Of a stretch of 64,000 nucleotides of DNA, positions 1,117 through 55,977 are shown in pieces. Numbering within the stretch: position 1 is the stretch's first letter; each line of letters opens with the position of its first letter. The position numbers and the translations under genes were made by a program. The DNA is taken from assembly GCA_946965045.2 (NCBI GenBank), contig OX337228.1, positions 6,882,001-6,946,000 of the forward strand. The letters run 5' to 3'. The notes under the pieces are model-generated. The model saw nothing but the letters and a program-made list of their open reading frames with translations, did no database searches and had not been told where the DNA came from. The stretch is from Epithemia pelagica. Its lineage: Eukaryota > Protista > Bacillariophyta.

Positions 1117-1326
1117 GGTTCATTGTCCATCAGGGTGTCTTCTTTTGGTCATACGGATGATGTGATCATGTCTCGTGAATGGATGGCCCTCCGAATCTGC
1201 GACCCAAACGCGGTCACGAAAGACGCAGCAAAGGATGGTGTTGCTATTATTTGCTATGGAAGGAGAGATTTCAATTAGGTGTTAGTCTTTATGAATGGAA
1301 ACGAGGAAGAAGTCGATACATGGTCA

Positions 1327-3306: not shown

Positions 3307-3685
3307 TGTGCGTAATGGTTCAAGAACCTATACACTTGGATGATTCAAAAGACCCGTGTCGACCTCTCGTCCAAGCCCTTTGATCGAAAGAACGAAAAAT
3401 CAAAAGTGTGGTGGTGGGAGATGCAGACGTGGGGCGAAAAAATGGGACTGAAAAGGGGATGACACGACACCCCCAAAACAGAATAACTTAAGCGTTCGGT
3501 ATTGAAAATGATTCTAATATCTCTGTGTACAAATTAATATGACCGCTGGAAACTGGATCCGGATCATTGAAATTCCTCCCCACCACACGCAACAACGGAT
3601 CCAGCCAAGACAACAACAACAATCCATTGACATCCTTGCTTTGGAGGAGACTGATTGTCTTGACAGTTGCAGTTCCCTTGAGGCA

Positions 3686-5847: not shown

Positions 5848-6354
5848 ATGAGTTTGTTGAGTTTGAGGTTCATCTTCCTTACGCTTGTGGCATGCCTTTG
5901 TGCCTTGAGTAGCTCCTTTTCGCTTTCGCCGCCCATCGACAATGGAGTACTTATGCCGAGAGATGTGCGCTTGAATGGCATGGCACAACCCGAAACACAA
6001 ATAAAGACGAAAGTAAAGGTGGATGTACAGACAAAACAAAAGGTTGAAATCAAGAAGAAGGCTCAAACTGGAGATCCCGTATCAAGAAATGAAGAAGACT
6101 TCCAAGATGCTCCGATGTATAAGCTGTTGCTTTTGTCAGACGACGGATACGATGGAGAACATGTGATCACACGAATGTGCTCCATCGTGGAAGATCTAGA
6201 TGAAGATGCGGCTGCTACAATCTTTCAACAAGCGATGCAAGAAGGCAAGGCCATGTGCGGAAAGTATCCATTTGAGCGTGCCGAACTCTTCAAGGAGCAA
6301 CTGCTTCGGTCGGATCCCATGATATTTGCTGATCTTGAAGAGGAGAATGCTTGA
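5848..6354 (+). CDS. clpS: Plastid-targeted ClpS-like N-degron adaptor
   Basis: Signal peptide with an SSS-F motif. ClpS-like core PMYKLLLLSDDGY..HVITRMCSIV..EDAAATIFQQAMQEGKAMCGKYPFERAELFKEQL. Confidence 0.75.
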   Translation: MSLLSLRFIFLTLVACLCALSSSFSLSPPIDNGVLMPRDVRLNGMAQPETQIKTKVKVDVQTKQKVEIKKKAQTGDPVSRNEEDFQDAPMYKLLLLSDDGYDGEHVITRMCSIVEDLDEDAAATIFQQAMQEGKAMCGKYPFERAELFKEQLLRSDPMIFADLEEENA

Positions 6355-6615
6355 TGAGTTAGTATTCATGCTTTGTTGTTTCATAAAAGGTTTATAGGAG
6401 GTACTTCTATTAGTTTGGCGGATTCTATGTTGGAGGGAAGCTAGGTCACGGGGAGATTATCTCGTAGCTTTAACGGTCGTCACAAACGTTCACGGTGCAA
6501 GTCGATCATCTATGCCCTCTTCCTTCGTATGGTGATCATGACTTTTATAGGTCACGCAGACGGATCGATTCTAAACTAAAGCAAGCAAAGAATGATATCG
6601 CTACAATAGAAGTAT

Positions 6616-9600
6616 CTAGACGGCGGAACGCAAACGACGACGGCCCTTAGATACCATTTGATGGGTACCTTCCATGGATTGTCCGAGAAGTGAATCCGCG
6701 CTTTCCTCGTCCACATGCCCTTTTTCGTCGGTAGTTCCTGGGGCTAATCCCAGGTACTCCATGACATAGTAGGTATAGCCACCCAGAAAGAACACTGAGA
6801 ACATGATACAACCACTGGTCATGGCCTTGAGCTCCGGCTTGAGAGGTGTCCCTTCCCCACTTATCGAATCGTACATGGGAATGCTTTCAACAAGGGCAAA
6901 TGACATTGCCCCTCGGAGCCCAGCGAACCAAAGAACAAATTGCATCTTATGATCAATAATCACACCACCCGAAGAAACGGGAACAGTGCTCTGCCGTGAA
7001 TCTATCGATGACCATGGAGTGATTTGTCTGAGCTTCGTGAACATGTTGGCAAAAAACGATAAGAACGGGATCATCATCCCTCGACTGACACAACATGCCA
7101 GGACAGCCATGATTCCGTGGTTGATGCTCCAATGGTAGCGATGACTGAACAGGAAAAGGCCGAGGTAAGCAAAAATGGCAGTTTCCATTGTCGTAGCAAT
7201 CAACCCCGTAACGAAACCAATATGAGTCCGTGCAGTGGCCGATAGGTGACCTGTGGAAAGAGGTTTCTCCGAAATACGGGCTTCACTATCTTCCAGGTCG
7301 GGGCATCTCTGGCCGACGATATGTATATCCATGATAAAGCCTGTAGAAACGGTCGACACAATACCCGACCATCCAATTCCATCGCAGACATAATACGGTA
7401 GCAAAGCCCAACAAAAGAAGAGCAATACTTCCACCAAGGGTGTCTGACATCCTTGAAACAGCCAGAAATAGGCCGTACCGGCGTAGCCAGCAATGGCACC
7501 CACCATGAGTGATCCAAAAGCCACAACAAAGAAGTGAGACGTTGCTTCCGTGATTGTTTTTTGATCAATGATCATGTGGTCATCGAGAAAGTTCACCAGA
7601 GTTTCAAACAGAACAATGGCAACGCCGTCATTGAGTAAGGATTCTCCAAAGATGAGGACGTAGATGGTATCCTTGTCTGTCATTCCCATGTTGCTGAGCA
7701 CGCTCAGTACGGCAATGGGATCAATACTGGAGATCAGAGCTCCGAAAAGGAGAGATTCGATGTACGGAATGGGTGTACACCAACTGGAACACATACTAGA
7801 TCCTCGGTGAAGGATTTCAGCCGTTATGACTGTTGCGAGCAGGGTTCCAATGGTGGCATACAAAAGAATGGGAACAACATGCCTATTGAATGAAGTCTTG
7901 TCAATGGACAGGGCGGCTTCAAAGATGATGGGTGGTACCATGATCCGCAAAAACCACTGCCCGTCGAAACTTATGTCATGATGCGGAAAGAACATGAGAA
8001 CGTATCCACTTGCGATGCCCACAGCAATACAGCCGGCAGCCTCCGGCAACCAGAGAATTCGAAAATGTCGAATCAGGCTCTTGACCATTCCACAAAGAGC
8101 CATCACGAGCACAATCAAGAACAGACGACGATCGGATATTTGTTCGTCACCGCTTGAATTGCAGTTTTCATGATAGACATTGAGAATCGATGAGCAACAA
8201 GTCCGGGCTTCTACCGAGGAAGGATCGTTGAGCACGGCGGAAACGGCAGCGGCCGTGTTGGACATGGCTTTGGAAGAGACTGCCGCTTCTTGTGCAGCAG
8301 CATTGGTCTGATTGATCAACTTATCTCCTTGTTGAAGGATTAAAACATCCTGGATAACACCATCTCCTGCATGTTTCTTCAAGGTCGGCAAATCAAGATT
8401 GGAACTGACATGCTTTGTGGCATTGCTCGCCAGAACGTTGGACGAAGGGATGGTTTTGTTGGATAGTCCGAATTGAACCAATCTTCGATGATTTGAGGGT
8501 TGTGACATACTGTCACGATCCAACAGCTTTCGTCTCAAGTCTACATACACGAAGGAGTCCCAATCCCTGGATACAATATGCTCGGCATCGTTCCACACCT
8601 TTATAATTTCGTCTTCCACAAACAAAAAGTCATTGGTCTGACCAAACCATAATCTCCAAATGTCATGGAATTTCCGTTGCGTCTGCCACAGCCACAACTC
8701 GATCAAGTTCCAGTAGTAGCTGGATCGAATGTACAAATCATCAGTGTTCTCCTCCGCAAGACCAAGACGCCTTTGATGATACATGCGTTTTTGTTGATTT
8801 TGGTTCTTGATTCGTTTTCGACGGCGATTTTGAAATCGATGTTTAAAGTGAAGCCCATGAGATGACTGTTTGGACACTTGTTGTTGTTGAGGATTCGGTT
8901 CCACTTGATGTTGCTGTGGTCGCTGCTGCTGAGGTTGTTGTTGTTGTGGCGTAGCAGCTGTCGGTTGATCTCCACAGGTTTTATCAAAGGCTTTTTTCAA
9001 ACCTTGGCATTCATCTTTGGCATCCGTCGCGTTAATGACAAAACTCACGACGGATTCCCGACATTGCAGAGCATCGGCCGCACGCAAGGGAAGAAAGGGG
9101 TACAAGGAAGTGGGTAAGGGATCGGCAGCACGGTGAGTGGGCTTGGCATTTGACGCCTCGCCCTGGACAGTTGAGTCCTGTCTCTCGTGATTGTTGGATT
9201 CCTGCATGGTCTTGCTGGTTGTGGTTCCGGTTGCAGTGGATTCCATGGTATAGGATCGAATGCTAATGAGAGGGCTGGGCGAGGAGGGCAATGTGACAAT
9301 GTGATTCCACAAAATCATGACGCCACACACAATACTGGCCAATGCTAGCAGTTGACAATTGCGACGCCGAAGGGGATGACGTCCTGTACCCAGCCCCATC
9401 TTTTTGGGTGCACCGAGAACCACCACCATGGGATCCAGGGCACTGTTACTACTATTACTTGCTTCAGCACCACCAAGATGATCCGATATGGATAAAGTTC
9501 CGGGGCCAAATGCCTGTTGTTTGGACAAAAGGTTGTCACAGTACAATGAGATTAGGCTCATGTCGAAAACTGGGTCGTTCTTGGAACGTAGGTATGGCCC

Positions 9601-38057: not shown

Positions 38058-39491
38058 GCTCAACTCAAGAGAACTGCAAAATTGTTGTTGGAGACGACAA
38101 ATGACTCGTTTATGGCCAATGGCTCCCAAGGATCCTTGTTATCGCGACTGACCGTGGCGGCCTTGCGTCTCAACAATCATGCAATCGCCACGAACGCCAT
38201 TTCCCATCGTCAAAATCAGTTTCGCAATGACATGAATCCTCTGGAAAGTTGTGCGATTGTACGAAATCTATTGCGCGCTGGAAATGGGACAGAGGCGTAC
38301 CAAATCCTCGAGGAGGAATTGTCGTTGCCCATGATATCAACCAACGAGGACGAAACGACTGAAACACATTGCAATTTGTTAAAATTTCGAGCCCAAGCCC
38401 TGGCATCCATTGCCTCGTGGCATTTTTTCGGGGGAGAACCTCGAGCTGCAGTGTATGCGTGTCGTATAATGTGTGCCATGGGACCTGCTGTGCGCCAGGC
38501 AGAGATTTCGGGTTCGGAACTGGGAGTGCCCTTTTTGCGTCTCTTACAAGGCGCCAGTCAATGTCAATCCAAGATTCGTACAGGAGAAATAGTCAACGAG
38601 GCTTTCCTTGGCCCCAACAGCGAAAAAGTGAGCAAACTCCAAGTTCCCTGTAACGTAGTGTATGCCGTTTTGGATGTCATGATGACTTTACCTTCGGAAA
38701 ATGACGACCGCGTCTACGAGGTACTTTCGAATGCCTTGGTACGCCGCGTTCTGTTTGTGACGGGGGCAGTCAACATGGATGGTTGTCCTCCACCCGATCG
38801 AGGGGAAGCGGCCTTTATCGGAAGAAGCAATGTGGGCAAGAGTAGCCTGGTCAATGGCGTGACGAACCGCAAAGCACTGGCCTATACTAGCAAACGACCC
38901 GGCAAGACACAACAGTTCAACTTTTTTGCCGTCAATGACAAGGTCGGTAGAGAACAAGAAATCAAATACGGCGACATGGTGCATGGAAGCAAGGATGCAG
39001 ATTCGTTCTATATGGTAGACGTAAGTGAAATTGCTGTTTCGTGGACATCTGGAAAGAGCGCTCGTTCTCACACGTGCTGCTTCTACCAGCTCTCCGGATT
39101 TGGCTACGCCAGGGTACCAGAGAAACAACGCCAAGAATGGTCCTCCTTTATGCAAGATTACATTGCAACTCGCCCAACCCTTCGAGTCTTGTTTCACTTG
39201 ATTGATAGTAGGCATGGTCCAACTGAAGAGGATGCCGCTATTATGAAGCAAGTCGAGGAAAACATTCCTCCCACAGCCAAATATGTAATTGTCCTAACAA
39301 AGGCGGATAAGAATAGCAAAGGAGCACCGGGAAACTATTCTGGAAAGGTATCCAACGATGTCATGAACAAGCTGCGCCAGGTAATGGGAGAAACGTTACA
39401 GCATGATGTTCCTGTTGTTTTGACATCGGCGGAAAGCAAGCTCGGCAGAGATAAAATGTGGAGCTATCTTCGCCGTGCTGCCATTTCCTAA
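38055..39491 (+). CDS. engB: EngB GTPase copy 2: 5'-truncated but open; 69-nt intron 39021-39089
   Basis: Homology to the other copies starts at 38058, with an ATG at 38055 just outside it. G1-G4 are present, but G3 reads DLSG instead of DLPG. The presequence is missing. Confidence 0.7.
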   Translation: MAQLKRTAKLLLETTNDSFMANGSQGSLLSRLTVAALRLNNHAIATNAISHRQNQFRNDMNPLESCAIVRNLLRAGNGTEAYQILEEELSLPMISTNEDETTETHCNLLKFRAQALASIASWHFFGGEPRAAVYACRIMCAMGPAVRQAEISGSELGVPFLRLLQGASQCQSKIRTGEIVNEAFLGPNSEKVSKLQVPCNVVYAVLDVMMTLPSENDDRVYEVLSNALVRRVLFVTGAVNMDGCPPPDRGEAAFIGRSNVGKSSLVNGVTNRKALAYTSKRPGKTQQFNFFAVNDKVGREQEIKYGDMVHGSKDADSFYMVDVSEIAVSWTSGKSARSHTCCFYQLSGFGYARVPEKQRQEWSSFMQDYIATRPTLRVLFHLIDSRHGPTEEDAAIMKQVEENIPPTAKYVIVLTKADKNSKGAPGNYSGKVSNDVMNKLRQVMGETLQHDVPVVLTSAESKLGRDKMWSYLRRAAIS

Positions 39492-39519
39492 ACTGTGGCG
39501 CACGGTTCTCTTAAGTCTA

Positions 39520-41170
39520 TCAACTGGTTTCGGTCCCTTGTTTCCCCGACGACATGACCCAATCCGGCATGCGATTCAGTTTCCAATGACTCAGATCGAC
39601 CTTGTTCCGTTCGGCCAGGGCAAGCACTTTCAAAAACAGCAGTGTTGCCGGTTCGGCATTGGAACCAATTTCTTCGCAGATAATGTTCAAAACAATCTCA
39701 AAGGCGTGATGTGACGGTGGATCATCGATATCGTACAGCATTTCGACCTTCGAACCTCGGTGGCATTCATTAACAGGGGAGTGGTAAGACTGTCCATTTT
39801 TACCAAGAGATCCCATGCTTTCTTGGACCAATATAGTTCCTCTGGGGGCGTTTCTCCTTTTTGCTTAGCTTCTTGCCAATAAGCCCATAGGACACGTTTG
39901 TAGTCGGCTCCTTTTACTTGTACACCCAATCAGGGTTCGCAGCTACAAGTGCGCCAGCCATGTCGTAAAGTGTTGTCCCACTTGCGGAGGAGAAATGAGG
40001 GTGAGCAGCGTCGTATGTTGCGAGGTGCTGGTTAATGACTCCGACTTGGACATGGACGAATCCAGCAAGGCCATGACAAATTCCACGTCACTGACAGAGT
40101 TTCGATCGGATTTGGGTGTGTCGCATAATAATGGCAGAGCAGATGTTTGCACTGTTCAAGGTACCACCCAGACAGAGGAACTGGAGGACTTTTTCGGTTT
40201 GCGAGGCATCCAAAATGGTAAAGGTGGGATCTTGTTTGAGTGCAATGTCCAAGAGCTCGATAAAGCGTTCCGAAGCCTCTCGACAATATTCGGGCAAGGT
40301 GAATCCAATTCCTGCCGGAGTGGATTACGACGATGTGGTTGTTGAGCTTGGAGCAAACGGGCAAACGAAAAGAGCATGGGTCGCAACACGTTGAGAGTGG
40401 TGGATTGTCCCACTTTGGTATACTCGTGAATCGCCGTATCCGATTTGGAGTTTTTCGGATTGTCGTCTGGTTTCGATTCAGAGTCTGCTTCTTCTTCCTC
40501 TTCTTTTTGTGCACGACCGGTCAAAAAGTTGACAATGCTGGATGCGGTGCAACCCTCGAAGAGCCGCCAGTGCCAAATCCAAGAGTTGCATTTGAGTTCG
40601 TCTCTGTTTTCGGTAGGTGGTTCGTCGTCAAGGGAAAGCTTTGGTTTGGACGACACAGCCCCATCTCGCACAAAGGACTCGAATCATATGGTCCTCTCGA
40701 CTGTGCACCACGGCACTCTTTTCAATGGCAACTTGCGCCTTGCAAATCGCTTCGTCGAATGATTTGGAGGCACCATCAAAGTCACCTTGCTTCAGAAGCG
40801 CCCGACCATGTCGTGTTAAGAGTTTCACTTCGAGCGGTGGCCCCCATCTCTAGAGAAATGCTCTCCGTTTTTGGAAATGTGCTTAAGGCCATCACGGCAA
40901 TCACAGGCCGACACTTCGAATAGACCCCATCATTAACAGTGAGGCTGCTCGTTTCGAATGGAGAACTGCTAACAAATCTCCCAATTGGATACAAGCTGGG
41001 CTTTCGGATAGCATTCTAATACCATGGTATAATGGCGAATTGAAGCCCCGTAGTCACCTTTCATGTAGCACCTTTCATGAAGCACCTTTCATGTAGCATC
41101 GACGAGCGTCTTCCTTGATTGCCGCAATGGAATTCTTCATCTCCATTCTTGCGACCGTGTCACGATGCCC
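39520..41170 (-). pseudogene. TPR-repeat protein pseudogene, copy A
   Basis: TPR-like pieces across frames: AAIKEDARRCYMKGDYGASIRHYTMVL, LHSKRAASLLMMG..CDCRDGL, LLTRHGRALLKQGDFDGASKSFDEAI. Multiple frameshifts and stops. Confidence 0.7.
41055..41096. repeat. 14-bp tandem repeat CACCTTTCATG(T/A)AG x3 interrupting the TPR reading frame
   Basis: Read directly; copy B has four units. Confidence 0.9.
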
Positions 41171-41393
41171 CTCTGGTTGATTGTTGCGCCGAACTCCGTT
41201 GCCCTCGAGGAACGTGTTGTTGCCGTAGAGGTGCGTGCAAGACTGCCCCGACGGTTGATTGTTGCACTGTGTTAAACCGACCCCGCTGCCTCGCAGCTCC
41301 AGGGTCCGATCGCCAATCAACACGAAACGCCAACAACAACACGCAACAATCCAACACGCACAAAAAACAAATACGAACGAAATACGATTGACC

Positions 41394-42314
41394 ATGATGA
41401 TGTGTGATTGTAATTACTGTTACGAAAAGATGATCAGCTCCGAATGGGCTCTGTTAGTTGCTCCTTTTGTGGTTCTCATACTGTGTTACGGTGTCGCTGA
41501 TGTCCTCGATGAGGCGAAACTTATCGTCCAACACCTGTTTCGGGTCATTTTCAGCAAGAAAAGTCGTACTACAAGTAGCGAGCATACGGAGCTTCGACAC
41601 GAACATGCGGAGCTTCGACAGCTTCGACACGACAAAGCTCAGCTTCAACAACAGCTGGCCATTGCCGAAGCTAAGCAACAAAAAGAAATTGCAGCGAAGG
41701 ATGGAGCCTACAAGAAGCTTCGTCGCGAGAATGCGGCGCTTCGAGTGAGGAAAGTGCGGTCTGGCCGAAAGCTTCGACGCGAAAATGCTCAGCTTCAACA
41801 ACAGCTTGCTGTTGCCGAAGCAAAGCTTGCTGCGAAGCAACGCGAGAATGGTCGCCACGAGGATGGAGAGATCGAGATTCGCGATCGCGAGGAGGAGGTC
41901 GACGTCGACACTGTTGCTGTTCTGCCTTGCGAGTTCGACGCTGACTTGGACTTCCCTCCTCTCGCACTCGCAGACGATCTCGAGGACGACGAGGAGACCC
42001 CTCTAGTTCCAGTGGACCGTCCTGAGCCTGAACCCGCGCTCATCCCCGACAACGACGACGAAATCACTTTGGGGCACGACTCACCCCCTCGAAAGTCCAC
42101 CCCTCCTTCCCCCTACCCCACCCCCACTGAAAAAGATACCTCGCCTCAGATGGATGAGAATGCCCCCCAGAGCGTGATCGAGAGTTCCGCCGGCCCCGAG
42201 AACACCCCACATTTGGGCAGAATCCTTACTGTTGCCTACTCCAAAAAGGCACGCCGAATGGTTCACGTTCGACGATCCGCTCGTCTTTTGTCAGCGGGTA
42301 CGGGTAAAAAATAG
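41394..42314 (+). CDS. Intact orphan ORF, 306 aa (TM - coiled coil - acidic/Pro linker - basic RRSARL tail), copy A
   Basis: Hydrophobic WALLVAPFVVLILCYGVA, the repeated heptad AQLQQQLA(I/V)AEAK, and the C-terminus KKARRMVHVRRSARLLSAGTGKK. Open in both duplicates. Confidence 0.7.
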   Translation: MMMCDCNYCYEKMISSEWALLVAPFVVLILCYGVADVLDEAKLIVQHLFRVIFSKKSRTTSSEHTELRHEHAELRQLRHDKAQLQQQLAIAEAKQQKEIAAKDGAYKKLRRENAALRVRKVRSGRKLRRENAQLQQQLAVAEAKLAAKQRENGRHEDGEIEIRDREEEVDVDTVAVLPCEFDADLDFPPLALADDLEDDEETPLVPVDRPEPEPALIPDNDDEITLGHDSPPRKSTPPSPYPTPTEKDTSPQMDENAPQSVIESSAGPENTPHLGRILTVAYSKKARRMVHVRRSARLLSAGTGKK

Positions 42315-42553
42315 AAAAACAGAAAAATAACATGTCGGTTGTCGGTTGCCAGTGGTACGTGCGCACGTTCGTGTCGGTTATGAATCTTTCCATACTCTCA
42401 CTCTACCCCTTCTTCTGTTTCTAGCGATTGCAAAATTCTACTCCTACTCCTACATCAGCTGAGTCTAGCTCGAGTCCTTGTCGGAGATGTCCTTGTTGGT
42501 TTGTTGGTTTGTTGGTGTGTTGGTTGTCGGTGTGTTGGTTGTCGGTGTTATCA

Positions 42554-42971
42554 CAAAACCCTGGTGGCACGAGGACTTTGTCCTTGTGTCATCAGGTATG
42601 GCATGGAGACTTCGGTCTCTGTGCCATTTGGGAAGAGTGCCATAGTTGCCCCTGGAGAATCCATTGATTCCTCCAGGCTTCCCAAATTTCACAAAATCCT
42701 GGTGGCACGAGGACTTTGTCCTTGTGTCACCAGGTATGGCATGGAGACTTCGGTCTCTGTGCCATCCCAAAATCCTGGTGGCACGAGGACTTTGTCCTTG
42801 TGTCACCAGGTATGGCATGGAGACTTCGGTCTCTGTGCCATCCCAAAATCCTGGTGGCACGAGGACTTTGTCCTTGTGTCACCAGGTATGGCATGGAGAC
42901 TTCGGTCTCTGTGCCATTCGGGAAGAGTGCCATAGTTGCCCCTGGAGAATCCATTGATTCCTCCGCTTCCC
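42554..42971 (+). repeat. Structured tandem array: four 76-bp double-hairpin units plus two ~62-nt linker modules (U-L-U-U-U-L'), copy A
   Basis: Units start at 42554, 42692, 42768 and 42844. Each has hairpin CCTGGTGGCACGAGGAC-TTT-GTCCTTGTGTCACCAGG and hairpin ATGGCATGGAGAC-TTCG-GTCTCTGTGCCAT. Confidence 0.9.
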
Positions 42972-43189
42972 TACCCGCTGTATTTAAGTGTTGGGTTGAT
43001 CGATAACGAGTGGATTAGTGTTTCGGCTAAAATGTTTCTATATAACATGTAGTGGTAACAATAGCAAGTGGAATTTTTGAACATGCACGACAACATTGCT
43101 GACTAGTGATTCCTAGGAGTAGTCGACAATCAGAGAGGATAAATGGTAATTGCTGTTTAAGTGGCTGAAGCTACTTCATGCGCTTCTTT

Positions 43190-44600
43190 GTGAGCTTTCT
43201 TGCCTTTCCTACACCAGAGCGACCCTTCTTTTTCCGGAAACTTGATGGTCCAAATCCATCATCCTATTCGTAGTCGATCTCCCTTGGCGTATTGTCCCTT
43301 TCTTATCTTTCTCTCTTTTTCAAAACACCACCACCCTCAACTACGCTCTTTAGCACCTTCATACTTGGTTCTCGTTCATTCTGCGAAACCTTCTTATTTC
43401 CAGTGGCACTCTTGTATTTTGGTTTCTTCCGATTGGACAACACATCTTTTTGCGCTATGGTTCATCCTCTCTCATTGTGTCAAATCGCTCCATAGATGCA
43501 GTCGATCGTTGAGTGACCCAGAGAGGAGAAACCGTGGAATCCTTGCCACGCTTCCTGGATGATATATCGGTCTACTCTTTTTTGTCGCCTGCAAGTCTAC
43601 TGGGACGCCAGGTATGTGGACGGTGGAACCATTGTCACGATCCATGGGTATTTGATTTCATGGAGCGACAAGTGGTGCCGCTTGCCAAGACTCTTGCACG
43701 TTCCGGATTGCGCATACCTTGTTCTGTGTGTTTCTCCATTCGGGCACGCTTTTCGCTTCGCGCTGCCGTTCCCATGGATCTGCATGAGAGGGATCCTCCT
43801 TGTTTTTGACCTCCACATAATTTGGCCATTCGTTGCTGTCGTCGTTTGCTGTTTGATATCCTCCATGACGGAACATTCATGTTCCAGTGGCTTTGTCCCA
43901 TACCGTTCGCGAGCGCTTGTTCTTTGGCAATGGAATTCCTCTCTCCCCCGCGCAAACGTTTCCCATTTCGTCTTGTTCTTTGCTTCTGGAGGAGGCTGGA
44001 ATGACCACGTACGTTGCGTGAGAGTCTGACAAACTGGACAAGAACACGAGGAACTCGACAATCGTCTGGCAGAGGCAGACGCACCATTGCCCCAGCGTCA
44101 CTCGTTTCGTTGGGGAGTTGCCACACGGCCTCTACAAGAAACTGGGCACAACCACCATTGGAGGCGTTCTGGAGTAAACAAGCCTCGTCGACACGGTCAA
44201 AGTCGAACGCAGGGGTCCACGATGCTTTGAGTTTGCTGGTTTTTGTTTCTGGTCGATTGAGAGCATATCGACGAGGTGCGCAATCATGGCCAACAACCAA
44301 TTTTTCAAATCCAAAAAGTGCCAAAGGTTCTCCGTTGGACGACACGGGCTGCCGAATTGGCGTTTCCATTGTCATTGGAGTTGCGCTTTCCGCTTCACGT
44401 TCCTGTTGTGAATTTTCCGATGCACTGGCACTTTCTTGGTCGTCCTCGACGGCAAGGCCGTCTTGGCATTCTGAACCATCAATTCCTATAGTTCCTCCAT
44501 ATTGGTTGTCACAGCAGCAACCTTATGGGACACCAATTCTCCCGTGGCGAATTCCTGTGGAGAATGAATCCGTCTTGAGAAGGACAATTCCTTGCACCAT
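43190..44600 (-). pseudogene. Pseudogene of an unknown gene ('gene X'), copy A
   Basis: Protein-like segments with stops and frameshifts (..SWTPAFD..ASNGGCAQFLVEAVWQLP..; WPNYVEVKNKEDPSHADPW..; IYHPGSVARIPRFLL..) shared with 53770-55290. Confidence 0.5.
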
Positions 44601-46106
44601 GATATTCGAGATTTTATAAAACAAACACACACACTCAAGTCCAACGAACATGGAGTAGTCGACCAAACTGATGACTGTGGATCTTTTGAGCGAGAAAAAG
44701 ATCTGAAGGATACGTGTGTTGAAAAGATACGTGTCTTGTCTACAGTATGGGCTATTCTAGAGGAAAACCACAGAAACTACCTATACTATGTTGTCGTATC
44801 GTCGACCGATTCACGAGCGACCCACTTCTGTCGTTCGAACTTGCGCGCCCACGCGAGGCGGCCCGGTGCGCGAAATGTGCGACCAAAACTTGGTAGCAGC
44901 AGGAAACCCTCCAATTAGAAGGCATACGAGTAGTGTAGTTGCCCTTTGGAATCCGCTCGATAAGGAGTACACCTCCGTGTGGTTGATTCACACTCAAGAC
45001 TCAATCTATCCTAACTAGTTCTCTGACTTTGATACCGACAGCAATGACGACTCGACGAGTTCGAGAAAGGACCGTTCTGCACAGGCGGTGGATTTGTGCC
45101 ATAAGATTTCAAGTCGATTGGCGAGCTTGATAGACCAGCACAAAGAGGAGGAGGAGGAGAATGATGATGATGGCTGCTTGGAGAAGAAGGAAGATCCAGA
45201 CCGTGTTGGTGATGGCCTTCGTTGGTCCACAGAGGCCGAGTTTCATGATCCGGACAATTCGTACGATATCAGGAGGATGACAAGCCTGCACACGACGAGA
45301 CCACAGTGAGTCTTTGAGGGCGTGCTCCAGAACGCGATGCAGAGTTTGAAGACAAGGTTCAAAACAAGAGTCGTCGTCAAGAGCAAAAGAAGACCCACCA
45401 AAAGAAAAGGCAAGACGCTCGGTTGGTGTCTTGTTTATTGAGAGTTTCGGAAAATCGTGACTCCTCCACAGTACTCAGTCGCCAACAAGCCTTGAGTCAG
45501 TCGATGCGCCCAATGGCTCAGACGACTTGTGGCCAGTGAAAAGCTGCGATTCTTTGATCGGAGTGCTGCGGATATTCGCAAGGCCTATATCGCAGCATGG
45601 TCACCCGTGTACATCCAGATCAAAATCACAATGTTCGAGCGGACCGTGCATTGCCTACAGTATTCTGTCGGATAAGAATCAACACAAAGCGTACGATGAA
45701 ACCTGGAGCGTTCAGTCCTATGATGGATGGATGGATGGATGGATGGAATGATCGACAAACGCGGCTGGCTCAAACCACACAAGCGACTCTCATGACAGTC
45801 GTACGACTTGTTACCATGGTCCAGAAAGTTGTAGGACCATTTGCCGTTCCTGTTGGAATTCTCGCGGCTGTTTTCCTTTGAAGTTGGCGTTCCATACTGT
45901 TGGAGTCGGTTCATTGTCAAGTGGAATGGTTTTGTATCAGTATGAAACTCAAACATTCAAGTGAAGCCGTAGGAGAACAACAAGGCATCTCATCCTCCTC
46001 CGACCATAGTACCAGATCCTATTACAAAAGCAGCACCACAGAGCAGCAGCGGTCCAATCTTGCATCAATTGGAACTGAATAATTTCACCTTGCAGGATGT
46101 GACACA

Positions 46107-49100
46107 ACGCACAATGGGTCAAGACAGTGAGGAAGCAGCAGAGTTTGTGGTGACGGTGCGAAATGAGCATGTGAAAATGAAAGAGTGGTACAACAGCAGC
46201 CACACCCACAGCCCGGTGACACGAATGCTACAGGACAAGTACGGTCCGTATCCCTCCATGTGGAAAGAAGTCCTGAATTGGCCAGGATGGAAGGAAACTC
46301 GGAAGGAATATCTCAAGGCAATGCAACAACAAGAAAATCGTCCAGGAGGAGTTGCCGTCAAAATTGAGAGCGACACCAATAACAATGGCACTGCTGGAGA
46401 GGCTCCCCGCAAACGAAAATCGCGATGGGGCAAAGCGGCATCCGAACCTTCGAATGGCCAGTCGGATCCTCCAGTGAACAAACGATTCGCTCCCCTACCA
46501 CCAGTCCCATCCTCACGACAACCACCCCGTGTCGTATTGCCGAGCATGTCCTTGGTCAACACCAACTTGACGCAGCAACAACAACAGGATCTCCGAACCA
46601 TGCAAGCCAAGCTTCGTGCCGTGAACGATCGTCTGGAAAATCTAGAAGTGGAAGCAGCACGTGTCGATGCGCTCCCACGAGAACATCGAGATCGATCGCC
46701 TTCGCCGCCTCCAAGTAAGTATAATCGTTTGCTCACAATCGACTTTTGTGTTGCCTTTTGGGGTTCGAATAAGAGTCCATTCCATGTTTCTTGTAGCTTA
46801 CCATCTTTTTCTTGTTTCTATATGTCTCTAGTTTACGGTGCTGATGGGAAACGAAAAAATACACGAGCGGTCCGTTGGAGGGAACGATACACGGCGGAGC
46901 GTCAAGACTTGTTGGAAAGTATCATGCGGTTATCCAACAAGGGCAACGTTGGACCCGTGTTACCAACGGGGGCGGCTTCCTTATTGGTACGACGGCGAGT
47001 CAAAAAGATTCTAGTACCCGTAGAAGAACATCCGAACTACAATTTTATTGGATTAATCATTGGACCACGAGGCAAGACGCAAAAAGAATTGGAAGCCAAG
47101 ACGGGCTGCAAAATTGCCATTCGCGGTCGGGGATCGGTCAAGGAGGGAGCTCGTGGTCGCCGGGATGGTAAAGTCATGGACGGAGACAATGAACCCTTGC
47201 ATGTGGCCATTTCGGGAGATGATCAACGTGCTGTGGATGCGGCATCGGAGATGATTGAACAAATGCTCGTCGTCATTGACGATGAAAAGAATGTGCACAA
47301 ACAACAGCAGCTTCGAGAATTGGCCCTCTTGAATGGTACATTGAAGGAAAATGATGCCTTTTGCGAAATTTGTGGTGAGAAAGGACATCGATCCTTTGAA
47401 TGTCCCAAACGATTCCTTAACAAGGGTGCCATGGGGAAAGGCATCAAGTGTGCCATTTGTGGTGACACTAGTCATCCCACACGCGATTGTACGCGACGCA
47501 ATCTGGACCCTACCAATCCTGCGGGCGGTGATGCCAACCAACAAGGAAGTGAACAAAAGATTGATTCTGAATATCTCTCTTTCATGGCTGAACTGGATGG
47601 CTAAAAGGCCAACCAGCCAGCCAACGAACCGATATCAAATGACGGTGGGGACAAACTTCCACCTCCACCACCCAATGGAAGCCTTCCACCCTTGCCGCCT
47701 GCACCGGAAGGGCCACCACCCTTACCTCCCTCTGCAGCATCGACTACCAGTGGAACTACGCAACCTCCTCGTCCCTCCGCGCATGCCCCAAATTCTTTGT
47801 ATAGAAATTTCCAACCCGAAGGAAGTATGGCACAGCCACAACAACAACAATATCATCAACAAGCAGGATATGGTGCGGGCTATAACAACCAACAGTATCA
47901 GTATGGGAGCTATGGACCACAATCACACCAGCAGCAGCCCCAACAAGCTACACCGCCACCTCAACAACAGCAGCAAGCAGCCACACCGATCAAACCAGGT
48001 GAAGAAACTGCCGGGTGGGACCCTTCTAGTTACTACGGTAGCTACGACAATGGGGGAGGAGGATTCAATTGGTGGTGATGACCATGTATCGACTTCTTCC
48101 TCGTTTCCATTCATAAAGACTAACACCTACTCCTAACTGAAATCTCTCCTTCCATAGCAAATAATAGCAGCACCATCCTTTGCTCCATATTTCGTGACCG
48201 CGTTTGGGTCGCAGATTCGGAGGACCATCCATTCACGACATGATCATCCGAATGCCTGAAAGATACCCTGATGGACAATGAACCATGAACTCCAAGTCCT
48301 TGCTATTATGCGTCCCCCTTGCTGTTTGTTTCTACGAAACTGTCTCGTTCAATGTGCAATTCATTCCTCAAACCCTCGGTGCAAATAATGTCAGGAGATT
48401 CTGTTCTGCAGCAAATTCTGTAACTTCTGTCGAAAAAGACGATTCCGAGGCTCGTCCGAAGCTGACCAAATTGTCTCGTCCAGAGCGCAAAGCCTTGGAA
48501 CGTGCAAGGAAAGCCAAAGCCTCATCGCAACAAGACGGCAATCGCAAAAGACAAACTTCCACGGTCGATTCTCCCGAATTGACGGCCGAATCCACGTCGG
48601 AGCAGGTGTTGACGGCCATTAAGAGAGCCCAAAATAGTCGAGATACAGCTCAACTCATGAGAATTGCAAAATTGTTGTTGGAGACGACAAATGACTCGTT
48701 TATGGCCAATGGTTCCCAAGGATCCTTGTTATCGCGACTGGCCGTGGCGGCCTTGCGTCTCAACAATCATGCAATCGCCACGGACGCCATTTCCTATCGT
48801 CAAAATCAGTTTCGCCATGACATGAATCCTCTGGAAAGTTGTGCGACTGTACGAAATCTATTGCGTGCTGGAAATGGGACAGAGGCGTACCAAATCCTCG
48901 AGGAGGAATTGTCGTTGCCCATGATATCAACCAACGAGGACGAAACGGCTGAAGCACAATGCAATTTGTTAAAATCTCGAGCCCAAGCCCTGGCATCCAT
49001 TGCCTCGTGGCATTTTTTCGGGGGAGAACCTCGAGCTGCAGTGTATGCGTGTCGTATAATGTGTGCCATGGGACCTGCTGTGCGCCAGGCAGAGATTTCG

Positions 49101-49403
49101 GGTTCGGAACTGGGAGTGCCCTTTTTGCGTCTCTTTCAAGGCGCCAGTCAATGTCAATCCAAGATTCGTACAGGAGACCAAATAGTCAAAGAGGCTTTCC
49201 TTGGCCCCAACAGCGAAAAAGTGAGCAAACTCCAAGTTCCCTGCAACGTAGTGTATGCCGTTTTGGATGTCATGATGACTTTACCTTCGGAAAATGACGA
49301 CCGCGTCTGCGAGGTACTTTCGAATGCCTTGGTACGCCGCGTTCTGTTTGTGACGGGGGCGGTCAACATGGATGGTTGTCCTCCACCCGATCGAGGGGAA
49401 GCG
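46107..49403. repeat. Inverted duplicate of window positions 3313 to 1 (SF1 plus the EngB 5' part)
   Basis: Reverse-complement colinearity. The SF1 end begins 7 bp upstream of the ATG (ACGCACAATGGG); the other end is set by the window edge. Confidence 0.95.
46114..48078 (+). pseudogene. SF1: SF1 copy 2 with a premature TAA at 47602-47604 (truncated protein or pseudogene); intron 46715-46831
   Basis: GGC AAA AAG in copy 1 is GGC TAA AAG here. The downstream frame stays open to the original stop at 48078. Confidence 0.85.
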
Positions 49404-50092
49404 GCCTTTATCGGAAGAAGCAATGTGGGCAAGAGTAGCTTGGTCAATGCCGTGACGAACCGCAAAGCACTGGCCTATACTAGCAAACGACTCGGCAAGA
49501 CACAACAGTTCAACTTTTTTGCCGTCAATGACAAGGTCGGTCGAGAACAAGAAATCAAATACGGCGACATGGTGCATGGAAGCAAGGATGCAGATTCGTT
49601 CTATATGGTAGACGTAAGTGAAATTGCTGTTTCGTGGGTCTGGAAAGAGTCTCATTGCGCGCTCGTTCTCACACGTGCTGCTTCTACGAGCTTCCCGGAT
49701 TTGGCTACGCCAGGGTACCAGAGAAACAACGCCAAGAATGGTCCTCCTTTATGCAAGAATACATTGCAACTCGCCCAACCCTACGAGTCTTGTAGCACTT
49801 GATTGATAGTAGGCATGGTCCAACCGAAGAGGATGCCGCTATTATGAAGCACGTCGAGGAAAACATTCCTCCCACAGCCAAATATGTAATTGTCCTAACA
49901 AAGGCGGATAAGAATAGCAAAGGAGCACCGGGAAACTATTCTGGAAAGGTATCCAACGATGTCATGAACAAGCTGCGCCAGGTAATGGGAGAAACGTTAC
50001 AGCATGATGTTCCTGTTGTTTTGACATCGGCGGAAAGCAAGCTCGGCAGAGATAAAATGTGGAGCTATCTTCGCCGTGCTGCCATTTCCTAA
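48285..50092 (+). pseudogene. engB: EngB copy 3: full-length with presequence, but nonsense TAG at 49793-49795; intron 49614-49690
   Basis: After splicing it reads DLPGFGYA..LRVL*HLIDSRHGP (TTT in copy 2, TAG here). G2 reads RLGKTQ instead of RPGKTQ. Confidence 0.85.
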
Positions 50093-50120
50093 ACTGTAGC
50101 GCACGGTTCTCTAAAGTCTA

Positions 50121-51800
50121 TCAACTGGTTTCGGTCCCTTGTTTCCCCGACGACATGACCCAATCCGTCATGCGATTCAGTTTCCAATGACTCAGATCGA
50201 CCTTGTTCCGTTCGGCCAGGGCAAGCACTTTCAAAAACAGCAGTGTTGCCGGTTCGCCATTGGAACCAATTTCTTCGCAGATAATGTTCAAAACAATTTC
50301 ATAGGCGCGATGTGACGGTGGATCATCGATATCGTACAGCATTTCGACCTTCGAACCTCGGTGGCATTCATTAACAGGGGAGTGGTAAGACTGTCCATTT
50401 TTACCAAGAGATCCCATGCTTTCTTGGACCAATATAGTTCCTCTGGGGGCGTTTCTCCTTTTTGCTTAGCTTCTTGCCAATAAGCCCATAGGACACGTTT
50501 GTAGTCGGCTCCTTTTACTTGTACATCACCGCCCCCAATCAGGGTTCGCAGCTCCAAGTGCGCCAGCCATGTCGTAAAGTGTTGTCCCACTTGCGGAGGA
50601 GAAATGAGGGTGAGCAGCGTCGTATGTTGCGAGGTGCTGGTTAATGACTCCGACTTGGACATGGACGAATCCAGCAAGGCCATGACAAATTCCACGTCAC
50701 TGACAGAGTTTCGATCGGATTTGGGTGTGTCGCATAATAATGGCAGAGCAGATGTTTGCACTGTTCAAGGTACCACCCAGACAGAGGAACTGGAGGACTT
50801 TTTCGGTTTGCGAGGCATCCAAAATGGTAAAGGTGGGATCTTGTTTGAGTGCAATGTCCAAGAGCTCGATAAAGCGTTCCGAAGCCTCTCGACAATATTC
50901 GGGCAAGGTGAATCCAATTCCTGCCGGAGTGGATTACGACGATGTGGTTGTTGAGCTTGGAGCAAACGGGCAAACGAAAAGAGCATGGGTCGCAACACGT
51001 TGAGAGTGGTGGATTGTCCCACTTTGGTATACTCGTGAATCGCCGTATCCGATTTGGAGTTTTTCGGATTGTCGTCTGGTTTCGATTCAGAGTCTGCTTC
51101 TTCTTCTTCTTCTTCTTCTTCTTTTTGTGCACGACCGGTCAAAAAGTTGACAATGCTGGATGCGGTGCAACCCTCGAAGAGCCGCCAGTGCCAAATCCAA
51201 GAGTTGCATTTGAGTTCGTCTCTGTTTTCGGTAGGTGGTTCGTCGTCAAGGGAAAGCTTTGGTTTGGACGACACAGCCCCATCTCGCACAAAGGACTCGA
51301 ATCATATGGTCCTCTCGACTGTGCACCACGGCACTCTTTTCAATGGCAACTTGCGCCTTGCAAATCGCTTCGTCGAATGATTTGGAGGCACCATCAAAGT
51401 CACCTTGCTTCAGAAGCGCCCGACCATGTCGTGTTAAGAGTTTCACTTCGAGCGGTGGCCCCCATCTCTAGAGAAATGCTCTCCGTTTTTGGAAATGTGC
51501 TTAAGGCCATCACGGCAATCACAGGCCGACACTTCAAATAGACCCAATCATTAACAGTGAGGCTGCTCGTTTCGAATGGAGAACTGCTAACAAATCTCCC
51601 AATTGGATACAAGCTGGGCTTTCGGATAGCATTCTAATACCATGGTATAATGGCGAATTGAAGTCCCGTAGTCACCTTTCATGTAGCACCTTTCATGAAG
51701 CACCTTTCATGAAGCACCTTTCATGTAGCATCGACGAGCGTCTTCCTTGATTGCCGCAATGGAATTCTTCATCTCCATTCTTGCGACCGTGTCACGATGC
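50121..51800 (-). pseudogene. TPR-repeat protein pseudogene, copy B
   Basis: Same fragments and most of the same lesions as copy A. It has a longer GAA (poly-Glu) run and lacks one stop/deletion found in copy A. Confidence 0.7.
51673..51728. repeat. 14-bp tandem repeat CACCTTTCATG(T/A)AG x4
   Basis: Read directly. Confidence 0.9.
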
Positions 51801-52045
51801 CCCTCTGTTGTGGAACTGCACCCGACGGTTGATTGTTGCGCCGAACTCCGTTGCCCTCGAGGAACGTGTTGTTGCCGTAGAGGTGCGTGCAAGACTGCCC
51901 CGACGGTTGATTGTTGCGCTGTGTTAAACCGACCCCGCTGCCTCGCAGCTCCAGGGTCCGATCGCCAATCAACACGAAACGCCAACAACAACACGCAACA
52001 ATCCAACACGCACAAAAAACAAATACGAACGAAATACGATTGACC

Positions 52046-52966
52046 ATGATGATGTGTGATTGTGATTACTGTTACGAAAAGATGATCAGCTCCGAATGGG
52101 CTCTGTTAGTTGCTCCTTTTGTGGTTCTCATACTGTGTTACGGTGTCGCTGATGTCCTCGATGAGGCGAAACTTATCGTCCAACACCTGCTTCGGGTCAT
52201 TTTCAGCAAGAAAAGTCGTACTACAAGTAGCGAAACTGCGGAGCTTCGACACGAACATGCGGAGCTTCGACAGCTTCGACACGACAAAGCTCAGCTTCAA
52301 CAACAGCTGGCCATTGCCGAAGCTAAGCAACAAAAAGAAATTGCAGCGAAGGATGGAGCCTACAAGAAGCTTCGTCGCGAGAATGCGGCGCTTCGAGTGA
52401 GGAAAGTGCGGTCTGGCCGAAAGCTTCGACGCGAAAATGCTCAGCTTCAACAACAGCTTGCTGTTGCCGAAGCAAAGCTTGCTGCGAAGCAACGCGAGAA
52501 TGGTCGCCACGAGGATGGAGAGATCGAGATTCGCGATCGCGAGGAGGAGGTCGACGTCGACACTGTTGCTGTTCTGCCTTGCGAGTTCGACGCTGACTTG
52601 GACTTCCCTCCTCTCGCACTCGCAGACGATCTCGAGGACGACGAGGAGACCCCTCTAGTTCCAGTGGACCGTCCTGAGCCTGAACCCGCGCTCATCCCCG
52701 ACAACGACGACGAAATCACTTTGGGGCACGACTCACCCCCTCGAAAGTCCACCCCTCCTTCCCCCTACCCCACCCCCACTGAAAAAGATACCTCGCCTCA
52801 GATGGATGAGAATGCCCCCCAGAGCGTGATCGAGAGTTCCGCCGGCCCCGAGAACACCCCACATTTGGGCAGAATCCTTACTGTTGCCTACTCCAAAAAG
52901 GCACGCCGAATGGTTCACGTTCGACGATCCGCTCGTCTTTTGTCAGCGGGTACGGGTAAAAAATAG
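52046..52966 (+). CDS. Intact orphan ORF, 306 aa, copy B
   Basis: Differs from copy A only near the N-terminus (N/D, F/L, HT/TA). Confidence 0.7.
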   Translation: MMMCDCDYCYEKMISSEWALLVAPFVVLILCYGVADVLDEAKLIVQHLLRVIFSKKSRTTSSETAELRHEHAELRQLRHDKAQLQQQLAIAEAKQQKEIAAKDGAYKKLRRENAALRVRKVRSGRKLRRENAQLQQQLAVAEAKLAAKQRENGRHEDGEIEIRDREEEVDVDTVAVLPCEFDADLDFPPLALADDLEDDEETPLVPVDRPEPEPALIPDNDDEITLGHDSPPRKSTPPSPYPTPTEKDTSPQMDENAPQSVIESSAGPENTPHLGRILTVAYSKKARRMVHVRRSARLLSAGTGKK

Positions 52967-53205
52967 AAAAACAGAAAAATAACATGTCGGTTGTCGGTTG
53001 CCAGTGGTACGTGCGCACGTTCGTGTCGGTTATGAATCTTTCCATACTCTCACTCTACCCCTTCTTCTGTTTCTAGCGATTGCAAAATTCTACTCCTACT
53101 CCTACATCAGCTGAGTCTAGCTCGAGTCCTTGTCGGAGATGTCCTTGTTGGTTTGTTGGTTTGTTGGTGTGTTGGTTGTCGGTGTGTTGGTTGTCGGTGT
53201 TATCA

Positions 53206-53547
53206 CAAAACCCTGGTGGCACGAGGACTTTGTCCTTGTGTCATCAGGTATGGCATGGAGACTTCGGTCTCTGTGCCATTTGGGAAGAGTGCCATAGTTG
53301 CCCCTGGAGAATCCATTGATTCCTCCAGGCTTCCCAAATTTCACAAAATCCTGGTGGCACGAGGACTTTGTCCTTGTGTCACCAGGTATGGCATGGAGAC
53401 TTCGGTCTCTGTGCCATCCCAAAATCCTGGTGGCACGAGGACTTTGTCCTTGTGTCACCAGGTATGGCATGGAGACTTCGGTCTCTGTGCCATTCGGGAA
53501 GAGTGCCATAGTTGCCCCTGGAGAATCCATTGATTCCTCCGCTTCCC
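53206..53547 (+). repeat. Structured hairpin array, copy B: three 76-bp units (U-L-U-U-L')
   Basis: Units start at 53206, 53344 and 53420, exactly one unit fewer than copy A. Confidence 0.9.
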
Positions 53548-53769
53548 TACCCGCTGTATTTAAGTGTTGGGTTGATCGATAACGAGTGGATTAGTGTTTC
53601 GGCTAAAATGTTTCTATATAACATGTAGTGGTAACAATAGCAAGTGGAACATTTGAACATGCACGACAACATTGCTGACTAGTGATTCCTAGGAGTAGTC
53701 GACAATCAGAGAGGATAAATGGTAATTGCTGTTTAAGTGGCTGAAGCTACTTCATGCGCTTCTTTGTGA

Positions 53770-55290
53770 GCTTTCTTGCCTTTCCTACACCAGAGCGACC
53801 CTTCTTTTTCCGGAAACTTGATGGTCCAAATCCATCATCCTATTCGTAGTCGATCTCCCTTGGCGTATTGTCCCTTTCTTATCTTTCTCTCTTTTTCAAA
53901 ACACCACCACCCTCAACTACGCTCTTTAGCACCTTCATACTTGGTTCTCGTTCATTCTGCGAAACCTTCTTATTTCCAGTGGCACTCTTGTATTTTGGTT
54001 TCTTCCGATTGGACAACACATCTTTTTGCGCTATGGTTCATCCTCTCTCATTGTGTCAAATCGCTCCATATGCAGTCGATCGTTGAGTGACCCAGAGAGG
54101 AGAAACCGTGGAATCCTTGCCACGCTTCCTGGATGATATATCGGTCTACTCTTTTTTGTCGCCTGCAAGTCTACTGGGACGCCAGGTATGTGGACGGTGG
54201 AACCATTGTCACGATCCATGGGTATTTGATTTCATGGAGCGACAAGTGGTGCCGCTTGCCAAGACTCTTGCACGTTCCGGATTGCGCATACCTTGTTCTG
54301 TGTGTTTCTCCATTCGGACACGCTTTTCGCTTCGCGCTGCCGTTCCCATGGATCTGCATGAGAGGGATCCTCCTTGTTTTTGACCTCCACATAATTTGGC
54401 CATTCGTTGCTGTCGTCGTTTGCTGTTTGATATCCTCCATGACGGAACATTCATGTTCCAGTGGCTTTGTCCCATACCGTTCGCGAGCGCTTGTTCTTTG
54501 GCAATGGAATTCCTCTCTCCCCCGCGCAAACGTTTCCCATTTCGTCTTGTTCTTTGCTTCTGGAGGAGGCTGGAATGACCACGTACGTTGCGTGAGAGAG
54601 TCGGACACACTGGATCAGAAGACTGTCGTCCAACCACACGTTCGACAACTTACCAGCTGAGCACACGAGGAACTCGACCATCGTCTGGTAGAGGCAGACG
54701 CACCATTTCTCTAGTGTCACTCGTTTCTGGGGGGAATTGCCACACGACCTCTACAACACAAACTGGGCACAACCACCACCATTGGAGGCTTTTGGGAGGA
54801 AACAAGCCTCGTCGTCGACACGGGCAACGTCGAACGCTGGGGTCCACGAGATCAACGTCTTGTGTGTCCGTGGTGTTGGGCTTGGAGGAGTTTGCTGGTT
54901 TTTTTTCTGGTCGATTGACTTGAGCATATCGACGAGGTGCGCAATCATGGCCAACAACCAATTTTTCAAATCCAAACGTGCCAAAGTTTCTCCGTTGGAC
55001 GACAACACGGGCTGTTGGATCTCCGTCTCGTCGACGACAGGATCCTCCTCCACGTCATGCGTTTCATTGGCTATTCCATTGTCATCGATGGAGCTGCTAT
55101 CCGATTCACGTTCCTGTTTTTGTGAAGTTTCAAATGCACGGGCACTTTCTTGATCGTCCTTGACAGCAAGGCCGTCGTGGCATTCTGAACCATCAGTTTC
55201 TAATATAGTTCATCCACATTGGTTGTCACAGCAACCTTATGGGACGCCAATTCCTGTGGAGAATGAATCCGTCTTGAATAGCAATTCCTT
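53770..55290 (-). pseudogene. Pseudogene of unknown gene X, copy B
   Basis: ..ETLARLDLKNWLLAMIAHLVDMLKSID..FLPKASNGGGCAQF.. followed by a frameshift and stops. Confidence 0.5.
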
Positions 55291-55977
55291 GCACCATGAT
55301 ACGAGTATTCGAGATATTACACTCAAGTCCAACGAACCATGGAGGAGTCGACCAAACTGATGGAGCGAGAAAAAGATATCCGTACGTGTCTTGTCTAATA
55401 GAGTACGGGTTATTCTAGCTAGAGGAAGACCACAGAAACTACCTATACTATGTTGTCGTATCGTCGACGATGAGCTTTTGTTCGAACCTGCGCGCCCACG
55501 CGAGGCGGTCCGGTGCGCGAAATGTGTGACCAAAACTGGGTACCCTAGAGGGCATAACGTATTGTAGGTGCCCTATGGAATCGTCTCGATAAGGAGTACA
55601 CCTCCGTGTGGTTGATTCACACACAAGACTCAATCTATCATGACTAGTTCTCTCTAGGCATGCGATAGGAGGCGCCATAATAGTCTCTCGAATGCCCACA
55701 AGCTACCTATTAGTCTCCTATAGTCTAAAGCCACGATGGTGTGGGATGGATTCCCCTTGTGTGTGTGTGTGTGTGTGTGATGATTGAATTCTCTGTGGTT
55801 ATACTGTTACACTGTGCTGCTAGATACACTCCATGGCTGGTTCCCAGCTCCATTTGTTGGTTCCATCCCGTTTCGTTCCCCAGGGTCCGTAGTCTTTTAT
55901 TTCCCAGATTGCGCCCATGTATAAGAGGGGGTGGTGTCATTTCCTCGTTGTCATCGTATTATTTATAAAGAATGATT

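Follow-up and report, generated by a model that had tools for sequence, protein, structure and literature searches.

In the mRNA of the transferrin receptor, five iron-responsive elements form a regulatory cluster of stem-loops in the 3′ UTR, and histone mRNAs have their 3′ end defined by one short hairpin whose sequence is fixed. In mammals, the A-repeat of the long non-coding RNA Xist serves as a multivalent protein platform. To our knowledge, very few conserved RNA structures have been described in diatom nuclear genes, and no report of a comparable conserved hairpin element in such genes was found in the literature. The window analysed here, a stretch of 64,000 nt from the diatom Epithemia pelagica, contains two arrays of related hairpins, each downstream of a copy of the same gene. 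The arrays are real, non-chance features and represent a new diatom family of structured hairpin elements that are linked to genes; as judged from the sequence, they most likely act in the 3′ region of these genes as RNA of the sense strand.

Hairpin arrays and the gene family upstream

The features of the window were as follows.

41394-42314, + strand: gene copy 1, encoding 306 aa, with a C-terminus shorter than that of most paralogs
42315-42553, + strand: spacer from the stop codon of gene copy 1 to array 1, ending in a GT-rich microsatellite (42493-42548)
42554-42975, + strand: array 1, in the order A-B-C (internal), A-B, A-B, A-B-C (terminal)
42560-42627, + strand: unit 1 of array 1, hairpin A (with one extra G.T) followed by hairpin B
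42560-42596, 42698-42734, 42774-42810 and 42850-42886, + strand: copies of hairpin A, 17 bp (15 Watson-Crick, 2 G.T)
42598-42627, 42736-42765, 42812-42841 and 42888-42917, + strand: copies of hairpin B, 13 bp with 2 wobble pairs and a TTCG loop
42628-42685, + strand: hairpin C, internal form, 58 nt, separating unit 1 from units 2-4
42692-42917, + strand: three 100% identical 76-bp A-B units (A at 42698, 42774 and 42850; B at 42736, 42812 and 42888)
42920-42971, + strand: hairpin C, terminal form, 3 nt shorter, with the inner stem lacking its outer part
52046-52966, + strand: gene copy 2, a duplicate of copy 1
53206-53547, + strand: array 2, A-B-C (internal), A-B, A-B-C (terminal), with three A-B pairs
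38058-45024 and 48648-55653: direct segmental duplication of ~7 kb, from self-comparison

An earlier note on this DNA had described array 1 as made up of 76-bp units. This description stands for the three perfect tandem units (76-bp period at 42692-42917, 3.0 copies and 100% matches in TRF) but not for unit 1, which is set apart by the 58-nt hairpin C. The base pairing given there for hairpins A and B, including the TTCG loop of B, agrees with the sequence. Hairpin C and the second array (53206-53547) had gone unflagged; array 2 has exactly one 76-bp unit fewer than array 1. Each hairpin core occurred in seven exact copies in the window versus none in shuffled sequences, and folding of both strands, as had been proposed, gave structures far better than those of shuffles (z-scores of -14.5 for the + strand and -11.3 for the - strand). 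Consisting of head-to-tail 76-bp units, 1-4 per locus, the array fits the description of a minisatellite, a descriptive class that is compatible with function and does not exclude it.

The leader preceding the ATG (41300-41393) was CA-rich and the spacer preceding the array (42493-42548) was a GT-rich microsatellite of variable length; the two are thus complementary to each other in composition, with no significant long inverted repeat found between them. In public protein sets the arrays appear as proteins of 131-143 aa, and opposite-strand ORFs derived from them are annotated in public gene calls at 42465-42860 (- strand, 131 aa) and 53117-53530 (- strand, 137 aa). These opposite-strand proteins are annotation artefacts; such a spurious ORF used as a query retrieved three clusters only, all from the same assembly.

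The gene upstream of the array had been taken for a single orphan, which it is not: a word search detected 23 relatives at E <= 0.001, which without exception came from a few large contigs of one assembly (ENA ERZ21939226), the window itself lying on a 624.5-kb contig of it. When 1.84 billion representatives were searched with a profile, only two more fragments were added, also from this assembly, and no member was found outside this one raphid pennate diatom assembly among the ~15 billion proteins. Pfam and PDB sequence searches with the family protein returned only sub-threshold coiled-coil or membrane noise. The protein has an N-terminus rich in Cys and a single helix predicted to be a membrane helix, together with a coiled coil that differs in length between paralogs, regions that are acidic or rich in Pro/Ser/Thr, and a conserved basic motif; most paralogs also have a Lys-rich tail. 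An internal repeat (41616-41676 and 41766-41826, 150-nt spacing) corresponded to the variable number of coiled-coil repeats among paralogs. The gene family is specific to this diatom lineage, fast-evolving and young. Both copies in the window stop short of the end reached by most paralogs, and the first part of the spacer 42315-42553 was homologous to sequence that codes for the C-terminal tail in other family members; the usual stop of the family therefore lies ~170 nt before the first hairpin, which is also its position at the other loci.

Identity between the two copies of the segmental duplication was 97-99% over the first ~6 kb and 77-94% over the last ~1 kb, and an inverted partial copy was also present (1-3313 versus 46107-49403, 96%). 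Besides the gene and the array, the duplicated block carries neighbouring cellular genes, encoding an SF1/branchpoint-binding protein (KH domain and zinc knuckle) and a MMR_HSR1 GTPase; the SF1 protein shared 70% identity with that of Epithemia clementina and 54-60% with those of Amphora and Nitzschia, which places the host among the raphid pennate diatoms. At every locus the next sizeable ORF past the array ran in the opposite direction, and these ORFs were mostly unrelated between loci, as judged from prokaryote-style gene calls that are unreliable for these neighbours. After array 1, this ORF was located at 43635-44375 (- strand) and gave a sub-threshold match to RRS1.

Eleven paralog loci, chosen by protein similarity, were compared. 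The array was present on the strand of the gene in nine of them, that is, in every intact locus, with a start 170-260 nt after the stop codon, 1-4 A-B units, all in direct orientation, and with or without hairpin C. The proteins of paralogs keeping the hairpins were 66-98% identical to the window copy. Of the two exceptions, L001, the closest paralog locus, had its 3′ flank broken 91 nt after the stop codon by an insertion, so that its array, if present, lies beyond the insertion, and L008, the most distant paralog locus, was a rearranged fragment without the array. The insertion in L001 (7013-12921) contained an ORF of >1700 aa with a match to RVT_2 (Copia-type reverse transcriptase), which runs off the locus.

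The homology shared by the dispersed loci extended from ~100-250 nt upstream of the ATG to ~100-330 nt past the array. At the 5′ side it faded between -97 and -250, through a conserved promoter or leader; at the 3′ side its end varied by subfamily, and most loci continued into further conserved hairpin modules. An A-B covariance model, the construction of which had been recommended in the earlier note, matched nothing but the arrays in 173.7 kb searched on both strands at E up to 10. All copies compared are paralogs of one genome, and gene conversion could therefore add to the apparent conservation.

One subfamily had extra modules after A-B (L003 7185-7560, L004 5192-5720 and L010 5243-5860), comprising a short direct-repeat module and an A-like hairpin that resembled A with a symmetric 2-bp deletion and without the inner stem. 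In the same subfamily a perfect 14-bp stem enclosed its version of hairpin C, and the terminal hairpin module was one common to most window-type loci. At another locus, L007, several genes with HA domains (helicase-associated, PF03457) flanked the paralog (2123-3208 and 6174-7620).

Structure-preserving variation and strand asymmetry

Hairpins A and B were compared in 14 distinct units from the paralog arrays, in which 99.5% of the stem cells were paired. Eight of the ten variable stem columns retained a standard pair through G.U, and the other two were single-copy transversions, each breaking one stem pair. The C-to-T variant noticed earlier in unit 1 was among those yielding G.T, as seen in the unit alignment. 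Between A and B, two adjacent two-sided changes were observed, in agreement with the earlier description of the two hairpins as a homologous pair differing by two adjacent double substitutions that preserve pairing. One subfamily had a matching 2+2-nt insertion in both arms of B, resulting in a longer stem. Eight bases of the A-rich spacer preceding each A were invariant. The loop of A was one base shorter in one subfamily, and that of B was TTTG instead of TTCG (UUUG in RNA) in 5 of the 14 distinct units. Since the B loop is not conserved, an extra-stable tetraloop is no requirement, and the argument that had been built on C(UUCG)G fails.

The internal form of hairpin C had an outer helix of 8 bp and an inner stem of 11 bp; its 5′ internal loop (15 nt) was conserved, the inner stem carried one bulge on the 3′ side, and the loop was CAUU. 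The terminal form is the last element of the array at every window-type locus. The 15 distinct copies compared, which belonged to two subfamilies, shared the 5′ flank, the four-base loop and the single bulged base on the 3′ side, while most stem pairs were replaced. Seven of the 11 pairs were changed on both sides, mostly on one branch, between the two subfamilies, and 93.9% of the cells were paired. Neither this level of pairing nor the covariation score was reached by any of 500 shuffles, and slid controls were 27-50% paired. When run without a supplied structure, RNAalifold returned the same stem and bulge, plus the outer helix. Hairpin C shows true covariation, and its invariant unpaired parts were the loop and the 5′ internal loop; with the exception of these two, loops may vary freely, as may the number of units. 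Covariation was strongest in a hairpin that had not been flagged earlier; within A and within B, two-sided changes were absent among the 14 distinct units.

All non-canonical pairs had been reported to be G.T on the + strand. In the paralog copies, G.U was found on the + strand at 12 pair positions of A, B and C (in at least one copy), and A.C at none. Treating two B positions as homologues of A positions leaves ~10 independent cases of G.U, with a sign-test probability near 0.001. Among the variable columns of the A+B stems, seven were C/T, one was A/G and two were transversions. Outside the array, in the promoter, coding region and spacer of these paralogs, 87 variable columns were of the C/T type and 101 of the A/G type, with transversions roughly equal in number to transitions; this strand-symmetric background led us to reject a strand-biased C-to-T mutation pressure as the source of the G.U excess.

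Variable columns made up 17% of the A+B stems, a figure deflated by recent within-locus duplicates, versus 32% of the promoter, 42% of the spacer and 36% of the coding sequence, the last being inflated by alignment ambiguity in the coiled coil.

In 11 of 11 arrays the + strand was more stable than the - strand, by 10-34%. One A-B-C unit gave -73.3 (+) versus -57.9 (-) kcal/mol as RNA, and -37.2 (+) versus -33.9 (-) kcal/mol as DNA, so that the strand gap was larger with RNA than with DNA parameters. Two properties characteristic of conserved structured cis-RNAs were thus found: two-sided changes that keep the pairs (7 of 11 in C and two between A and B), and strand-specific pairing (12 G.U and no A.C, with the + strand favoured in all 11 arrays). 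The G.U-only pattern, the low variability of the stems and the strong covariation in independent copies support the earlier suggestion that the + strand is under selection for a single-stranded structure.

Searches for known families and candidate explanations

The array had not been recognised as a known family in the earlier note, and the Rfam scan recommended there gave the same result: no match was obtained with Rfam 15 at the curated gathering thresholds in the window and six loci, and a cut-off relaxed to an E of 1 brought up just two miRNA models, with ~30 bits versus thresholds of >100. A degenerate A/B pattern had no match in IMG/VR, JGI metagenomes or 185,579 prokaryote (GTDB) genomes. 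A pattern of the invariant parts of C was found in no viral contig (IMG/VR), and its three metagenome matches are due to chance, having neither complementary arms nor A-B units.

Several known classes were rejected on these and other grounds. A MITE or foldback element did not fit, there being no flanking inverted repeat and, in the 173.7 kb searched, model matches only in the arrays. Membership of the REP/BIME elements was dismissed on account of the diatom host, the direct orientation of all units and the absence of matches in the prokaryote genomes. An origin hairpin of an ssDNA virus was rejected by the variable loops of 3-4 nt and the lack of IMG/VR matches to either of the two patterns, and the virus-type 3′-end signal proposed earlier likewise found no viral counterpart in IMG/VR. 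A miRNA-type precursor was discarded, the local stems of 13-17 bp falling short of a ~21-nt duplex.

A cis-acting structured module of the 3′ region of the gene family, working as sense-strand RNA, is considered a reasonably probable identity of the array. The gene transcript would read into the array and the hairpins would fold locally as the transcript is made, jointly forming a platform that may define or protect the mRNA 3′ end or bind a protein. Candidate protein contacts are the invariant single-stranded parts, namely the loop of C, its internal loop and the A-rich spacer before each A, and the number of units would shift fast through unequal exchange between identical 76-bp units. In diatoms the poly(A) signal amounts to a weak triplet preceded by a UG-rich zone, which is not enough to locate the 3′ end (PMC6413133); the GT-rich microsatellite before the array fits either a location inside the mature 3′ UTR or one past the cleavage site. 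Of the roles suggested in the earlier note, an RNA-level multivalent platform or 3′-end element fared best, but the data do not divide RNA from ssDNA; G.T wobbles are tolerated in ssDNA too, and the - strand also folds far above shuffles. We regard it as rather improbable that the array is a family-specific 3′-end signal, polyadenylation-independent or RNase-dependent, that arose de novo with the orphan membrane/coiled-coil genes in one diatom lineage; the logic of such a signal would be like that of the histone stem-loop, but modular and amplifiable.

A DNA-level palindromic minisatellite could have hitch-hiked on the expansion of the family, its symmetry arising by hairpin-templated repair or gene conversion without any RNA function. 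The perfect tandem units, a copy number that differs even between duplicates of 97-99% identity, the symmetric indels in both arms and the derivation of all evidence from paralogs of one genome agree with such an origin, which is nevertheless judged unlikely. Templated correction should erase wobbles and bulges, so that the four fixed G.T pairs, and the single 3′ bulge of C that was kept while seven surrounding pairs were replaced, oppose it; so do the one-sided mismatches (12 G.U, 0 A.C) set against a symmetric background and the stems that vary less than coding sequence. A duplex role at the gene end between convergent genes, as a cruciform-prone, nucleosome-excluding or boundary element, would suit the convergent intergenic position of the array and has a precedent in yeast, where poly(A) sites have an excess of inverted repeats, which reduce nucleosome occupancy (PMC6420913). 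It would predict neither a strand preference of mismatch type nor a conserved bulge, and the yeast repeats are short, AT-rich and of another type than the diatom array; we consider it very unlikely.

Stable + strand hairpins, the opposite-strand position of the next sizeable ORF in every locus and the weak matches to miRNA models would be in keeping with a substrate of a double-strand-specific RNase, either a small-RNA precursor or a site of co-transcriptional cleavage that ends transcription before the convergent neighbour. That the array is such a substrate is doubtful, given stems of 13-17 bp that are short for Dicer-type products, miRNA matches of ~30 bits versus thresholds of >100, variable loops and neighbour genes known from unreliable prokaryote-style calls; the small-RNA precursor suggested earlier is itself unlikely because the stems reach only 13-17 bp. 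Least credible is the terminus of a mobile element using ssDNA or RNA hairpins (Helitron/HUH, REP-like or a retroposed cassette), which we hold to be highly improbable. The homology of the dispersed paralog loci does stop ~100-330 nt past the array, but these loci were picked by protein, so that shared flanks around the ORF are expected and are no evidence of mobility. Both boundaries fade, terminal inverted repeats were not detected, the loci contained no gene for a Rep protein, helicase or transposase, and neither unlinked copies in 173.7 kb nor viral matches were detected. A Helitron/HUH end in particular, one of the roles put forward earlier, was rejected for want of sharp termini common to the dispersed copies and of a Rep or helicase gene among the called genes of 12 loci.

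Comparison with known systems

As a putative sense-strand RNA module, the array is a defined candidate for post-transcriptional control or 3′-end definition in organisms where poly(A) signals are poorly defined. The young, fast-evolving family constitutes its own comparative series, in which three hairpins were kept with structure-preserving evolution, and the array illustrates the growth of a structured element by tandem duplication and symmetric indels.

Like the family-specific histone stem-loop, the array follows the stop codon; however, Rfam gave no histone stem-loop match at E values of up to 1, and the gene does not encode a histone. With the Xist A-repeat it has in common tandem units that each contain two short hairpins, with single-stranded spacers, but sequence, size and context are different, so that the likeness is one of working mode and not of membership. 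In 3′ UTR stem-loop clusters such as that of the transferrin receptor, several related hairpins also follow a coding region, have a conserved loop or bulge and covarying stems, and act on the sense transcript. No similarity to these clusters in sequence or model was found, and the diatom array differs from them in its tandemly amplified units of variable number and its three alternating hairpin types. The REP/BIME elements (PMC3184786) are likewise imperfect palindromes, grouped in clusters just after genes, with strand-asymmetric wobbles, and are thought to protect the upstream mRNA. They are prokaryotic, occur in hundreds of copies genome-wide, often in alternating orientation, and are linked to a dedicated transposase, whereas the diatom units are direct, tied to one eukaryotic gene family and absent from the 185,579 prokaryote genomes searched (0 matches). 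By analogy, the array would resemble clustered 3′ UTR stem-loops or bacterial extragenic palindromes in its action, while being a member of none of these groups.
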